This document shows positions 41,803 through 53,800 of a stretch of DNA of 64,000 bases, in pieces. The stretch spans positions 62,001 to 126,000 of the forward strand of contig NIVC01001362.1 in assembly GCA_002269645.1 (NCBI GenBank). Reading direction: 5' to 3'. The notes below the pieces were generated by a model. That model was not told the origin of the DNA. It was given only the letters and a program-made list of their open reading frames with translations, and made no database searches. The stretch is from Macrostomum lignano (taxonomy: Eukaryota). Each line of letters starts with the position of its first letter. Position 1 is the first letter of the stretch. The translations under genes were made by a program, and so were the position numbers.

Positions 41803-44800
41803 ATGTCGGAGCAGTCGAGGAACTCGCAAAAACAGCAGCAGCTAGCCTCAAGCGGCGTTGTTAGCTCGTCTGCTCAGCCGTTAGAGATCCGTCATTTTGA
41901 GCGGCAGAGTACGACTGGCAGGCAGCACAGAGCACACAGCAGTCAGTGCAGACGGAGCCGGTTTAACAGGCTGAGCCGGTTGAGCTGCTCAGCACCTACT
42001 GAAGTCGAAACGGTTGAGACGGCCAGCCAGGCGGGCGACTCGGAGACGAGCAGCGACAAGCAGGAGAATCAGCTGATGCGCCGGTTCAATCGGTTAACAA
42101 AGACCAGGATGAAGAGCGTCGGACATATTCCAGAGTTTGGGCAGCCTAATGAGTCCAGAATGAGCGCAAAACTTCAAGAAGATGCCGGGTTAGAAGTCTC
42201 GGATGATACTGTAGAAGTGAGTCTGACGTCTCCAGCTAACTTGCTCACACTGCGACTGCGTTGTGGCTGTCGGTAAACGCAACAATCAATTAGTGAATCG
42301 TTCAAACCAATGATCATTTTCAGACGAATTCAATTGGCAAGGAATCAACCGAATGCTCCAGCTCTTTCCAGTGCATGAACGACACCGAAATCAGGTGAGA
42401 GTTGCTCGGATATTTTCAGTTAATACGGACTTATTTTAAACGTTAAAGAGTTGGGTTCAATCACATAAAACTTATAAGAATTAAAACTCGCATTCTCCAT
42501 AGTGCATATTTATCCAAATCAGCTGTCTTGTCCTAAAAACAGATTTTAAAAGTGAGTGGCATTGAGCTACAAATTTTGACGGTAGCTTCTTGTAAGTTCG
42601 CGGACAATTTCGCGGCACCATCTCGTCAGCAAAAGAAACGCTGCATTTCGTTTTGTTCTAATAATTCGTATTTTTACACAGTGGGCTGGTGGGTCTCTTG
42701 CAAAAGGTGCTGCATCAAGTTTAGAGTAGCTTTTGTGGAGACTGTGATAGAGGTCGCCTAGAGAGATCATCAAATACCGTTTTGTTGGTGCCTTGTTGCA
42801 TGGAGCTGCTATTTCATGCAGCTTCCCAACTTCCTAAAATCTACATCAAAGACTAAAGTATAATTCCTAAATAATATTATACTCGTATGAGCTTGTCAAG
42901 ATGGCGCTTTTGAATCTATAGAAGTGGAGGATTAACTTATTTTTTCTACTATTTGTTTAGCTATGACGTGCAGTTGAAATCTAAACCTAACCTTTTTGTT
43001 ATAAATTTTCTTTTAAAAAACAGTCAATAAGCCCAATACTCGTCACAAAGTTAAGTCTGATCTCAGTGCCAAAACCTGCACTTCACAGAACGTTCTCCAG
43101 CGAACAAGCGGGCCTAAGCCTGCCTAAGCTGAAGACCAAGCTAAAGCTCAATCAAGTGCAGCGCGCTCACCTGAAGGAGCGCATCAGCGACCTTGAGGGA
43201 AACATTTCGACGCGTACAGATTCAAAGGAAACAATGTCAATGTCGGGCGGGAACACATCCTGCAAAATCGGGGAAGATCAGTTCTGCGATTTCACCATCG
43301 AGGTGGCCGTGTACACCGAGTCACCGCCGGCCGATAAAACGCTGTCAGACGAAAATGAAGACATGCAGCAGACGCTGACAGCAAAGCCTAACCAAGGAGA
43401 GGGTGAAACGGAATCCACCGATGCTCTGCAAAACCTGTCGGACGATCAGGCCAAGAGGCAGTCACGAGAACACTCCCTGTCTCTAACTGAGGCGGCAACC
43501 GCCGGCTCATCGTCCAGAGAAAACTCGGCTCCGTCGAAAGAGTCAAAAAATGAAGCAAAGAGATGCAGCAAAGTCTCGAAGAATGAGACAGATGAGGCTG
43601 GAGACGATTCTTGCCAGGAAACCAAAGATGCTGACTCACCAACTACAAGCCTGCAGAAGCTGTCGGAAAAGCGTTCAAGCAAGCTGTCCCGTGAATTTGA
43701 CGAAAATCTGGAAGAAAGCGACGAAAAATCAAAAGAGGAGCAAAGCGATCCTGCGTGTCGAGGCTCAAAACGGGCCTCGCTTAGTCGATCAAGCAGGAGT
43801 TCGAAAAAAAGCACTGACATCTTCGACCAAGAAAAGCCACGAAAAGGGTCGGGAAATTCTGAGAAGCTGGTAGAAAGGTTCAGCAGACTCTCGCAGAGTA
43901 TAGTTGAATGCGCGAAATCGAAGACAGGCGGCCGAGCTTCGAAAGAGCAGCTGCGCCGGACAGTGGACGGAAAAGACATACGAAGTTCGATCGCGTCCAG
44001 CAGGTCCAGTCAGCATTCTCAAGACCGCCAGTCCAGTGAGCGCCAAAGCAAGGCGTCAAGCGATAAAGTCGAGGATACAGAGAACAAAGCAACGCGAACA
44101 TCTCGGGAAAGACTATCGGATCAGTCAGATGACCAACAGAAGCGACGTTCAAAAGCTTCCGTGCAACAATCTGAATACGACCCAAACGTACCATCCAGGG
44201 ACGACTTGTCATCAGATTCGGGTTCTAAGAAAAGTTCAGAGAATGGGAAAAGAAAACGAAAATCAACAGTATCGCGAAAATCGGTCGAACAGTCAAGCGA
44301 AAAAGGTTCTATTGCGGAAAATGAAGACGAGCTTGAAAAGTCCAGAACAACGGCGACAGAGGCTAAAGAAACTGAACCTAGGAAGTCTCGTAGGTCGTCT
44401 GATCGATCAAGCAAGCGTTCGAATGATGAAGACCATACTGATGCCGCGAAAAGTCGTAAGTCCGATCTGGAGCCTACCGTTGCAAAGAGCAGGGCATCAA
44501 AGGAGTCGCTCAAATCGGAAGAGCGGTCAAGGTCAAGCAAGCACTCGAAAGACGATGATAATAATGAAGTTGAAAAGCGTCGCAGGTTGTCACGGGAATC
44601 CGCAAGGAAGTTGTCCGAACCTCTTAGAAGAGCCTCAAATGAGTCGCGCAGGTCGCACGATCGATCAAGCAAGCATTCGAATGACGAATCAGCTAGGGAT
44701 ACAACTGAGCAGAAGAGAGCATCAATAGAGTCACGCAAATCAGAAGTTAGGTCCAGCAAACATTCCGATTGTGAGGACAATGATGACGCTGGTGAAAAGC

Positions 44801-50800: not shown

Positions 50801-53800
50801 AGAAGCAGATTCTCGAGATGCAGCAGCAAGCAGATTCTATGCAGGAGTCGAATGAAGATGAAAATGACGACGACGATGCCGCTTTGAACGGAAACGAAGA
50901 AGAACCTCAGTCGAAAACCGAAGTGCCCGAAAGAAAAAGTTCCGAGACGCCTAGTTTCGCCCAGAATGAGGGCCCATCCAAGAACACAATGACAAAACCA
51001 TCTATCATCACAGCTGATGGACCGTCTACTTCACTCGCCGGTTCTGGCTCAGAGACTACGGAGGACGGCAATAACGAAGCGTCAAAGGCAAAGCGTTTAT
51101 CACAGAGCTCCGGTAGTAGTTCCAAGTCCGCTACAGAGGCTGAACTGGAACATAAGATGCAGCAAATTGATGCGCAACTAACCTCACGAGGACAGGACGG
51201 ACAGGACGAAAAGGAAAGCCTCCGGAATGAAGAGTCACTTTCGCAAGATCAGGCAGGTACTGTTTCTGAAAAGGTGGTAGAGAGACAATCTACCGGCGGT
51301 GCGTCTAGATCTTCTCGTCAGTCTGACAAAGCTGACAAGCTGAGACGATCGTCGAGGACTTCAATTGTTTCGACCGAAGAAGTCTTAACTGCTACCAGAG
51401 AGGCTAAAGAGAAAAACCCTCTCATCAGGGAAGAACGAAAGTCAGATTGCTCTGTTGCCATCGCTTCAACTGACGATGTGCTAAAGCAGTCCAGAGAGGC
51501 CGACAGGAAGAGAGCGTCTCTTGCTTCTAGGAAAGCGAGCCAAAAATCAGAGGACCCCGAAGAAACCGCCTTGTCAGCCGAAATGCGCGATAAAAGATCA
51601 TCGCTACCTGAGAGGGGCATTTGTTCTTCTGTAATAACTGCCGATGGGCCATCCAAGTCACTGGCCGGCAGTGATCAAGACATTGATGATAATCGGTCCA
51701 GAGATTTGTCTTCCAACGGTCTGAATGTTGAGAGGAGCTCCAAGGCTTCAGTCTCACAATCAGAAGGCCGACAGAGTAAAAGAGGCTCATCAATTGTTAG
51801 TCAAACCGACCGGAGGAGAGATTCTGAGACTCAAGACCATCCTAAAGTCCCGCCAGAGGTGCCGATAAATCAGCCCGGTACTTTCAATGGCGTAGTTTAC
51901 ATGTGCGAATCGACTACCTCGGAGTTAGTATCGAAGAAAGAGCAACAATCAGCTCCAAAAGAAGAGTCGGACGACGACAATGAATCGGCTGATCGTTGCC
52001 AGGACGATGCAAAAGAGGAGGCTTTGGCTGAAGATGATCGGGAGTCCAACGACGGCGAAAATGAGGCAGCGTCAAAGAGATCACAAAGTAGTAAAAAACA
52101 ATCCTCAGTTCAAGATGAAGGAGAAGAAAACCCAGAGTCGCATGATCGTAGAGATTCGGAAAAAGAGGAGGAAGATGCAGCCGAAGCAGACTTCAACGAC
52201 GATCCTATGAAACCCCATGAAGGAGGTGATCCTTTGAATATACCGTCACGTCTAGAACCGGCCGCTGAAGGAAGAGTCTCTCAACAAGTTGGTGGCATTT
52301 CTTCCTCAGACACCGCTGGACCGGCGTCTGCACAGACTTTGGATCCGAACGAATTGCAAGAGCAAGACTCGTCTGATTTGTGCGCGGAGGTTGAAATGCC
52401 ATCGAAGCTAAATACTGATGGCGGAAAACAGAAGGGTAAAAACAAAACTGAACAACGTCCGTCGACTGCTTCGCTACCCTCGTCAGGTCGGATTAGGCAA
52501 GCTAGCGGGCAGAGAACGTCGGAGATTCGCTTATCGTTAGCAGAGAACGGCCGGGTCAGCTCCGATCGAAAATCAGACGTTGATAATAAAGCAAAGGTAA
52601 AGGTATTCTTGACTGATGTGAGGTGTTGGTGTTGACATCCGTGGGTGTTGACAAGGGGGTTGTAGCCTAGTGGTTAGAACGTCGGACGTACGACTTGAAG
52701 GTCGGGTGTTCGATTCCCGATCTCACTGGAACGATTTGTGTCCGTGAAAAAGACACTTGACTCTGCATTGCTTCAGTTCACCCAGTTGTAAAATGGGTAT
52801 CAGCATAAGCTGGGGTAATTGAGGGTTTGACCCCCCCCCTCCAGTCCTTGGACTGAACAGCCGTACGCTCACAGCCTTAAGATTCGCCGCGCAATAGCGG
52901 CGGCTGAGCTGTCGGTTGCACATCTAGCCCAATTGAAGCAGGTACAATCAATTAAAATTAGTATTGTGGGTGTTGAGATATCGCAAATGCATCCAAGTAA
53001 AGTTTCAAGAGTTACCAATGCATTTATATGAGGGTTGGAGTGTCGCTAATACATCCGTGTGTGGGTGGGAGTGTCCACCAATGCATCGACGCATGTTGAA
53101 GTGTTTTCAGTACAAACCACGCGTGTACATTGAATTATCGCTATTGCGGACTTGTTATTTCAGTGGTCTCGTTCGATACAAAAATACATCTAAGAATAGA
53201 GTACTGGAAGACGGTTAGGTATATAGTCGTAATGTAAGTTTTACTATATACTACTATTATACTACTAATAGATACAAAGTGTCCCGAAATTGAAGGATCC
53301 TCAGTCACAGGGCGGCTCAGTTAGCGGAACCCAGCGCGACCAACGCGTCGAGTCGCTTATCGGTCGGTTCCGCGAAGCGGCCCAAGAGTGCGCCAACGTG
53401 CGCCTAGACAGGGAGGCGCTGCGACGCGAACTGGAGGCAACCAAATTCGATCTTCGCAGAGCGACCGCCGAGGCGCAGGAGCGTCGAACGGAACTGACTA
53501 TGGCTCGACGAGAAGTTGAACTCCGCGACGAAAGACTTCGACAGCAGGCGGCAGTTCAGGTTAGGCTTTCAGATGATCAAATCAACGCACATTATTGTCA
53601 AAGCACTGGAAATTATTAGGGCAACAAGTAGACTTGATTACAGGGGGAATTACAGAAATTTGTACCGATTCCCTCAGGTCCGCACAGAGAAGGAGGTTGG
53701 CAATCTTCGAAGCCAGCTGTCAGAGCTGCGCCGTCAGCTGGACTCGGCTGAGAACAGTTGCCAAGCTGAGCTAGCTCGAAATCAACGCTACAGAGCTCAA

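Follow-up and report, generated by a model that had tools for sequence, protein, structure and literature searches.

The stretch of DNA analysed here (the window) comprises 64,000 nucleotides (nt) of the Macrostomum lignano genome, positions 62,001 to 126,000 of contig NIVC01001362.1 (assembly GCA_002269645.1), and contains two tandem paralogous genes on the plus strand, designated gene A and gene B. Gene B includes a single 9,573-nt exon, hereafter the giant exon, which is truly coding; the gene has so far been found in Macrostomum only and lies in tandem with its paralogue. The giant exon encodes a Ser-rich, highly charged region that contains a long tandem repeat array and precedes a predicted coiled coil. 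Coordinates of the features of both genes are collected in Table 1.

In the frame of position 43024, the window has 3,214 codons without a stop between positions 42991 and 52632. When the bases were shuffled 300 times, the longest open run had a mean of 124 and a maximum of 206 codons, and the remaining five frames carry 54-379 stops over the open stretch. The boundaries of the giant exon are good splice sites: the acceptor at 43024 reads ttttaaaaaacag/TCAATA and the donor after 52596 reads GCAAAG/gtaaag, the slash marking the junction. An alternative acceptor, cttcacag/A at 43089, is used in a UniProt model, where it follows an optional 71-nt exon. If the 71-nt exon is included, the giant exon must begin at 43089 for the frame to be kept, and if it is skipped, at 43024; both splice forms give an intact coding sequence, of 3,868 and 3,866 amino acids (aa). 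Minus-strand open reading frames (ORFs) of 134-234 aa within the giant exon were rejected as genes because they are an expected by-product of the purine-rich coding strand.

The amino acid composition of the giant exon is dominated by S (19.0%), E (11.1%), D (10.6%), R (10.1%) and K (9.6%). Compared with composition-matched shuffles, the exon is strongly enriched in RRAS (21 against 0.4 ± 0.7), RR.S (33 against 6.4), RKS (34 against 6.0) and runs of at least six D/E/N residues (23 against 1.2), and [RK][RK].S occurs 74 times in total. An earlier sequence-only reading had described one giant stop-free exon rich in S, R, K, D and E, with at least 20 RRAS and many RKS motifs alternating with acidic patches, and each of these elements was borne out.

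That reading had also placed the giant exon upstream of, and fused to, a coiled-coil module, and this arrangement holds: the giant exon and the three 3' exons (e2, e3 and e4) are phase-compatible, and the UniProt model UniRef100_A0A1I8I0D4 connects the giant exon to the coiled-coil exons. This 2,263-aa entry, named 'FH2 domain-containing protein', is a partial model of gene B in which exon 1, the 71-nt exon and e2 are represented together with fragments of the giant exon and a portion of e3; the view that the gene is wholly unannotated is corrected by it. Residues 1-139 of the entry align to exon 1 at 99.3% identity. The name could not be substantiated, as no PF02181 match was found in the giant exon, the coiled-coil exons or A0A1I8I0D4 (Pfam, E <=1). 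An exact look-up of the entry in assemblies returned no record. The predicted product of gene B has about 3,870 aa, a mass of 433 kDa, an isoelectric point of about 5.9 and a grand average of hydropathy (GRAVY) of -1.58. No signal peptide or membrane segment was found in the gene B model, in which the maximum 19-residue hydropathy of 1.25 falls on a poly-Ala run; the C-terminus is polar and basic. The product also contains the clusters KRKRK, KRRR and RKKK, which resemble nuclear localisation signals (NLS) and make a nuclear localisation possible.

A second copy of the locus was found in the Mlig_3_7 assembly (NIVC01002037.1:133776-182420). It is colinear with the window, and each copy has transposon insertions of its own, so that the second copy is a separate locus. 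Such a copy is expected, since M. lignano is a hidden polyploid with 180 Mb in blocks at least 95% identical (PMC5730564; PMC10468722). The giant exon is 98.2% identical to positions 25322-34884 of the second copy, and exon 1 is 99.5% identical and gapless. The 122 nucleotide differences between the two giant exons create no stop codon, against 6.6 expected if neutral (P = 0.0014). Length differences are confined to one 1-nt gap in an A4 run and otherwise a net -9 nt within repeats, compared with 10 gaps in 807 nt and 6 gaps in 708 nt in the flanking introns. From the lack of stops and the near-absence of indels beside gapped introns, it was concluded that the reading frame of the giant exon is probably maintained by selection.

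Table 1 Features of genes A and B in the window (positions are those of the window)
Feature	Position	Strand	Description
Gene A (tandem paralogue)	33641-39724	+	UniProt A0A1I8HS66, 798 aa, 'Golgin-84'; located by tblastn of A0A1I8HS66 and GenBank BOX15_Mlig006043g2
Gene B exon 1	41803-42216	+	ATG, 138 codons, Ser/Gln/Arg-rich, without signal peptide; donor GAA/gtgagt
Optional 71-nt exon 2	42324-42394	+	TNSIGKESTECSSSFQCMNDTEI-; present in A0A1I8I0D4
Giant exon	43024-52596	+	9,573 nt, 3,191 codons, phase 0; alternative 5' end 43089
Repeat array	44332-49416	+	34 units of ~45 aa (28 distinct); exon aa 437-2131; iterated hidden Markov model, exon against itself
Recent internal duplication, copy 1	45187-46248	+	1,062 nt, in frame; contains 273-nt tandem repeats
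39-nt (13-aa) acidic mini-repeat	46132-46243	+	GDEDNEEIEEPQE type; 2.9 copies; Tandem Repeats Finder (TRF)
Recent internal duplication, copy 2	46483-47544	+
39-nt acidic mini-repeat	47428-47622	+	GDEDNEEVEEPRK; 5 copies; TRF
DGPS motif copy 1	50416-50463	+	KPSVITVDGPSSSLVG; unchanged in A0A1I8I0D4; LVG to LGG in the second genomic copy
DGPS motif copy 2	50740-50787	+	RPSFIELDGPSSSRIF
DGPS motif copy 3	50995-51042	+	KPSIITADGPSTSLAG
DGPS motif copy 4	51622-51669	+	CSSVITADGPSKSLAG
Coiled-coil exon e2	53305-53559	+	85 codons, phase 0; acceptor in A0A1I8I0D4 6 nt downstream (53311)
Coiled-coil exon e3	53678-54646	+	323 codons; GC donor CAG/gcaagc
Last coding exon e4	55480-55869	+	129 codons and TGA; aa 730-860 of BOX15_Mlig006043g2 match at 99.2%

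All 21 RRAS motifs lie inside the tandem array, between exon residues 535 and 2052. The consensus of the repeat unit is E-K-P-R-R-x-S-R-E-S-V-R-K-(P/S)-S-D-A-Q-(S/R)-R-A-S-K-E-S-R-K-S-E-D-R-S-S-K-(H/R)-S-N-D-D-D-N-D-E. Each unit consists of a basic, Ser-rich block with eight conserved Ser residues (unit columns 7, 10, 22, 25, 28, 32, 33 and 36), followed by an acidic tail without Ser; in the consensus, the first ~36 residues carry a charge of about +7 and the final ~9, the NDDDNDE tail, about -6. Basic residues occupy positions -3/-2 of the conserved Ser, in the contexts RRxS, RKxS and (R/S)RAS. The Ser residues are spaced as S-x-x-S ladders, the last of them directly before the acidic tail, and the pattern S..S..S occurs 54 times in the array against 13.8 in shuffles. 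Among the 28 distinct units, Ser was conserved at column 25 in 27, at column 22 in 26 and at column 10 in 25. Arg was present at columns 4 and 5 in 17 and 15 units, respectively, with Lys at column 5 in a further eight; column 19 held Arg in 8/28, Ser in 13/28 and Lys in 3/28, and column 20 held Arg in 21/28. Basophilic-kinase-type sites are thus supported as conserved columns of the repeat unit, as judged from its sequence.

The array contains duplicates of very different ages. By self-BLAST, the two 1,062-nt duplicates are 97.5% identical with no gaps at an offset of 1,296 nt, and the 273-nt tandem repeats, each 91 aa or two units long, are 98% identical (TRF). About half of the literal RRAS motifs sit in these 97-98% identical recent copies; 21 RRAS motifs therefore do not represent 21 independent events. 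Older units share about 60-70% DNA identity and retain the same Ser and Arg columns. When 543 unit pairs were pooled, the proportion of synonymous differences (pS) between units was 0.71, which is saturated, and that of nonsynonymous differences (pN) was 0.29, giving a pN/pS of 0.41. All four TCN codons occur in the conserved Ser columns, and the Arg columns alternate between CGN and AGR. That these columns have been kept through synonymous codon turnover is the signature of protein-level selection, directed in particular at the Ser and Arg residues.

Over its 1,695 aa the array is 48.5% charged with a net charge of -2, and contains 20% Ser and 7% hydrophobic residues. Its charge segregation parameter kappa was 0.207, compared with 0.14 ± 0.009 in shuffles, and charge autocorrelation peaked at lags of 45 and 91 residues, in agreement with the initial description of a charge-patterned polyampholyte with alternating basic and acidic stretches. 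R or K is found at -2 or -3 of 246 of the 345 Ser residues in the array. The large disordered region that had been proposed is consistent with the lack of a Pfam or PDB match, with the strongly negative GRAVY and with an AlphaFold run on the last 1,192 aa of the exon, which gave only two short helices and a mean predicted local distance difference test (pLDDT) score of 35, a single-sequence result of low confidence by itself. Overall, some 3,300 residues are predicted to be disorder-like, and after them come a predicted coiled coil, about 200 residues in length, and shorter helices.

Downstream of the array, four copies of the motif (K/R)PS-h-I-x-x-DGPSxS stand within otherwise non-repetitive sequence, and all four are present in the second genomic copy. 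They are taken to be a putative docking motif for a partner. PxIxIT, LC3-interacting region, SUMO-interacting motif, B56 and EF-hand readings were considered by eye for the DGPS motif and the acidic tails, and none fits every copy.

The C-terminal module of gene B (537 aa) was modelled by AlphaFold as a continuous helix over residues 8-210 with a pLDDT of 80-94, followed by shorter, less confident helices. Its hydrophobic residues recur with a period of 3.5 residues (spectral power 2.2-3.2, against at most 0.55 elsewhere), and a single unbroken heptad register extends over 29 heptads, with 62% L/I/V/M/F/A at the a/d positions. The module is accordingly predicted to form a heptad coiled coil of about 200 residues. 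Genes A and B are true homologues that share this module at 43% identity and have the same exon order; e2 is 58% identical to the gene A exon at 36771-37055. Gene A differs in its disordered N-terminal part, which is only about 316 aa long, has no array of 45-aa units and has a 147-aa exon where gene B has the giant exon. A short motif in this exon 3 of gene A, LDLPRLREQLQETERQRSKLKNRLAELAKL, has weak similarity to LSLPKLKTKLKLNQVQRAHLKERISDLEG, with which the giant exon opens (conditional E = 0.0024). The only tract in which the paralogues are still alignable as DNA is at the start of the main coiled-coil exon, where 37518-37813 and 53672-53967, the latter taking in the first ~290 nt of e3, are 86.5% identical; the proteins are about 90% identical there and about 40% elsewhere, which suggests gene conversion or very strong constraint.

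An exhaustive profile search with the module, applied without a word filter to 1.84 billion representative proteins, retrieved three sequences, all from Macrostomum: A0A1I8HS66, A0A1I8I0D4 and a 242-aa product of a contig from Logan SRR31628394. The last is a genomic contig of a diverged relative, with an intron upstream, and covers e3 only; it therefore has no bearing on the giant exon or its splicing. The coiled coil had been called a conserved module, a description that must be narrowed, as it appears to be genus-restricted as far as public data show. Word-indexed protein searches returned only BOX15_Mlig006043g2 and A0A1I8HS66 for the coiled-coil query, and nothing for the last 1,041 aa of the exon or for a 207-aa piece of higher complexity. 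These searches also missed A0A1I8I0D4, which is present in the collection and near-verbatim to the queries, so that their silence on homologues is uninformative. Pfam searches of the giant exon, the flanking exons, A0A1I8HS66 and A0A1I8I0D4 gave nothing above threshold, and the giant exon matched no Pfam family even at E <=1. In the PDB, neither the exon sequence nor the coiled-coil profile had a match at E <=0.1. The Golgin-84/GOLGA5 identity implied by the name of the gene A product was rejected: A0A1I8HS66 has no Golgin_A5 (PF09787) match, one exon fragment reaching 13.5 bits (E = 0.054) where 31.7 are required, and the hydropathy of the gene B product leaves no place for a C-terminal transmembrane anchor. 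By homology the gene appears to belong to no characterised family, as had been noted at the outset.

The reading that we tentatively favour, and that falls a little short of being probable, is that gene B encodes a phosphorylation-switched scaffold or spacer, in which a charge-block polyampholyte grown by in-frame duplication is anchored by a coiled coil. The coiled coil would dimerise the protein or anchor it to a structure. When unphosphorylated, the array would be a neutral, blocky polyampholyte whose alternating positive and negative blocks would favour self-association, compaction or coacervation. Basophilic kinases of the PKA, PKG, PKC or Aurora type could target three R-(R/K)-x-S sites per unit; phosphorylation of RRxS might then prime a CK1-type spread along the S-x-x-S ladders, and CK2-type sites would adjoin the acidic tail. 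Each basic block would thereby turn acidic, taking the array from -2 to about -494 if 246 Ser each carried -2. With the charge blocks lost, a self-attracting chain would become an expanded, self-repelling polyanion, the outcome being a switchable spacer or scaffold. On the basis of sequence features, the phospho-switch and the condensate reading are plausible. As to origin, the likeliest history suggested by comparison of the paralogues is that the gene was duplicated in tandem and that the counterpart of the 147-aa exon 3 of gene A then grew more than 20-fold through in-frame tandem duplications.

Several observations weigh against the switched scaffold. The full PKA consensus is R-R-x-S/T-hydrophobic, but the +1 residue in the array is mostly Arg (column 8, 16/28 distinct units) or Lys (column 23, 16/28). 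Of the initial proposal that RRxS represents a PKA consensus, the Arg residues at -3/-2 in conserved columns stand and the hydrophobic +1 residue does not, and the sites are therefore of a general basophilic kinase type, not specifically PKA sites. The ratio of nonsynonymous to synonymous substitution rates (dN/dS) between the two genomic copies was 0.56 overall; by segment it was 0.30 for the N-terminal part of the exon, 0.57 for the array and 0.66 for the C-terminal part. The overall and N-terminal values speak for a coding exon, but 0.56-0.66 denotes mild constraint only. Since the array owes its largest blocks to very recent duplication, its regularity is in part mere youth, and the single-sequence structure prediction is weak evidence for disorder. 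No orthologue of the giant exon was found outside M. lignano in the word-indexed searches, the exhaustive search having covered the coiled-coil module only. In addition, none of the proteins annotated in GenBank on the second copy includes the giant exon, and that copy carries a 1-nt deletion in the A4 run (second copy ~26527, window 44229), a frameshift that splits the frame into ORFs of 574 and 2,798 codons. The frameshift may be an error of a PacBio-era assembly, or one homeologue may really have been disabled by mutation.

A rather unlikely alternative is that the exon is coding but its array is a tolerated, near-neutral low-complexity expansion, with replication slippage or unequal exchange inflating a short disordered linker. 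The motifs would then be passengers, and function would reside in the coiled coil and the DGPS motifs. Expansion is clearly ongoing, given the 98% identity of the 273-nt repeats and the 97.5% identity of the 1,062-nt duplicates, and the concentration of RRAS motifs in recent copies, the array dN/dS and the fact that the paralogue manages with a 147-aa exon at the same position all fit this explanation. Against it, the diverged units keep the eight Ser and the Arg columns with a pN/pS of 0.41, and the second copy retains the frame and the unit count and has 23 RRAS motifs. If the array were only tolerated filler, the finding would be an ordinary one, since lineage-restricted low-complexity giant exons are common in invertebrate genomes.

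A distinctly unlikely explanation is that gene B encodes an arginine/serine (RS)-domain-like nuclear protein, a speckle or nucleolar scaffold like SRRM2, SON or Nopp140 that binds RNA or RS domains and is regulated by SRPK/CLK or CK2. The R/S/K/D/E-rich composition, the NLS-like clusters and the CK2-type Ser residues adjoining the acidic tails are compatible with such a protein, as is the number of RS or SR dipeptides in the array (132, against 93 ± 8 in shuffles). However, this excess is modest, the Ser residues are spaced as S-x-x-S and not arranged as RS runs, and Pfam searches detected no cwf21, G-patch, RRM, LisH or SRP40 domain.

It is very improbable that the giant exon is not expressed, being either part of a decaying pseudogene or an open frame in an intron or intergenic spacer of one transcription unit that spans genes A and B. 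The GenBank model BOX15_Mlig006043g2 joins the first four exons of gene A to e3 and e4 and omits the giant exon, the word-indexed searches returned no protein with the exon, and the second copy is frameshifted. Opposed to this are the length of the open frame relative to shuffles, the absence of accumulated stops or indels from copies whose introns gather gaps, protein-level selection among units, and the inclusion of the exon in A0A1I8I0D4, the very entry that the word-indexed searches failed to return. The exons of BOX15_Mlig006043g2 and A0A1I8HS66 match the window at 99-100% identity, and the switch between paralogues in the former falls exactly in the 86.5%-identical tract common to genes A and B. 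In the GenBank gene set, transcripts overlapping repeat annotations were removed (PMC5730564), a filter that explains the absence of the exon there. Given the position of the switch and this filter, BOX15_Mlig006043g2 is not proof of skipping and is read as a minor isoform or as an artefact of assembly or annotation. The gene identifier Mlig006043 was sought for expression classes in the supplements of PMC5816591 and PMC5730564 and was not found there. The locus offers a lesson in annotation: the UniProt model is in fragments and its 'FH2' name misleads, the GenBank model crosses from one paralogue to the other and loses the exon, and repeat-masking filters can remove real giant coding exons.

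That gene B encodes a secreted phosphoprotein or gland product (adhesive, seminal or matrix), phosphorylated at S-x-E in the secretory pathway, is extremely improbable, because, despite 55 S-x-E triplets in the array against 40 ± 5 in shuffles and the giant repetitive secreted adhesives that M. lignano makes (PMC8621496), the product lacks a signal peptide or hydrophobic segment and the TIL, vWD, EGF and TSP-1 domains of Mlig-ap1/ap2, and an intracellular location is indicated by its NLS-like clusters and long heptad coiled coil. Mlig-ap1/ap2 are recognised by a signal peptide, by TIL, vWD, C8, EGF and TSP-1 domains and by GRK or RP-1/RP-2 repeats (PMC8621496), and gene B has no such domains by Pfam and no signal peptide.

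Returning to the phosphorylation-switched scaffold, the design of gene B resembles, by analogy, a known class of giant, repeat-built, multiply phosphorylated disordered scaffolds. The repeat domain of Ki-67 is encoded largely by one giant exon. Like it, gene B has a long disordered repeat region with charge blocks that multisite phosphorylation could alter, but the 3,191-aa exon contains no FHA domain, PP1-binding site or K167R repeat (PF08065) (Pfam, E <=1). The sites in Ki-67 are proline-directed CDK sites, whereas those of gene B are RRxS; moreover, gene B is already blocky when unphosphorylated and has a coiled coil attached. A closer functional analogue is NPM1, in which phosphorylation removes a charge block and suppresses phase separation (Yamazaki et al. 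2022, PMC9106583); the gene B product would behave in the same manner. In Ki-67 and NPM1, phosphorylation tunes phase separation through charge blockiness in both directions (PMC9106583). Neither protein has any sequence relationship to gene B.

Nopp140 (NOLC1) and Treacle (TCOF1) consist of tandem acidic and basic units with many Ser residues and heavy CK2-type potential, and have a self-association element at one end. Gene B shares the tandem alternating units, the very many Ser residues, the potential for CK2-type phosphorylation and a candidate self-association element. In Nopp140 and Treacle, however, the Ser residues are in the acidic stretch, whereas in gene B they fall within the basic block, leaving the acidic tail without Ser; the giant exon has no LisH or SRP40 match in Pfam, and Treacle has one repeat per exon where gene B has all repeats in one exon. 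Neurofilament H and M combine a coiled coil that can build or join a filament with a long, charged tail of repeats, which is phosphorylated at many sites and serves as a spacer or brush. The combination of a coiled-coil part and a long charged repeat region recurs in gene B, but its module has no match to the intermediate filament rod (PF00038), the gene A exon reaching 17.3 bits against a cut-off of 40, its charged region is N-terminal and its sites are RRxS, not KSP. SRRM2 and SON encode an Arg/Ser-rich disordered repeat region in a single exon of several kb, as gene B does; gene B differs in lacking cwf21, G-patch and DSRM domains, in the D/E/N tails that make its array net neutral and in its modest RS excess. 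The layout of gene B is distinctive in that the basic block holds the Ser residues, the acidic tail has none and the coiled coil lies C-terminal to the entire region.

If the proposed mechanism is true, gene B would be a clean natural test case for the control of disordered polyampholytes by multisite phosphorylation, with a short regular unit and conserved Ser ladders in an animal open to RNA interference, in situ hybridisation and transgenesis. The locus also appears to show the birth of a giant exon, in which a duplicate kept its coiled coil while a small exon grew more than 20-fold in frame, and the expansion is continuing. A bolder version, which we consider distinctly unlikely, is that gene B is a genus-specific, recent, 433-kDa kinase-operated charge-block switch, condensed when dephosphorylated and a polyanionic brush when phosphorylated, that might build or dissolve some structure peculiar to Macrostomum, such as one in cilia, sperm or stylet-associated tissue. 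The gene would then provide a natural, independently evolved example of charge blockiness, with the inflation of the exon from a 147-aa ancestor readable next door.

Other features were noted in and around the two genes. A (TTAG)188 microsatellite without interruptions, at 54670-55423, occupies most of the last intron of gene B. A tRNA-like head (GGGGGTTGTAGCCTAGTGGTTAGAAC...GGTGTTCGATTCCCGATC) followed by a body like that of a short interspersed nuclear element lies at ~52655-52920, some 60 nt 3' of the donor of the giant exon; the head was called by neither ARAGORN nor Rfam, and Rfam and tRNA scans of the window found nothing. Minisatellites with a period of 4-49 nt are packed unusually densely into introns and spacers of the window, including most introns of gene A (1-418, 897-1929, 2862-3436, 19628-20379, 21115-21950, 22405-23435, 28683-30265, 31113-32007, 32687-33226, 34108-34529, 35633-36622, 37057-37432, 39010-39403, 39947-40523, 40913-41493, 60934-61736 and 62315-64000), and several give spurious long ORFs, such as those at 888-1877 and 60829-61479.

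Of the transposons by which the two genomic copies differ, a Pao/BEL-type long terminal repeat retrotransposon is found only in the window, at 22735-28183, with a pol ORF at 24705-27818, a fragment at 23701-24354 and matches to Peptidase_A17, RVT_1, Integrase_H2C2 and DUF5641. The insertion is missing from the second copy, where its flanks join directly (6780/6777). Conversely, a gypsy-type element with aspartyl protease, RVT_1, RNase H and rve is found only in the second copy, at ~18655-23183 between genes A and B, and the corresponding empty site of the window lies at ~40770. Colinearity with positions 1-6906 of the second copy places a PRS7/Rpt1-like gene for a proteasome AAA-ATPase at ~16170-21700; its called product matches AAA, Prot_ATP_ID_OB_C and AAA_lid_3.

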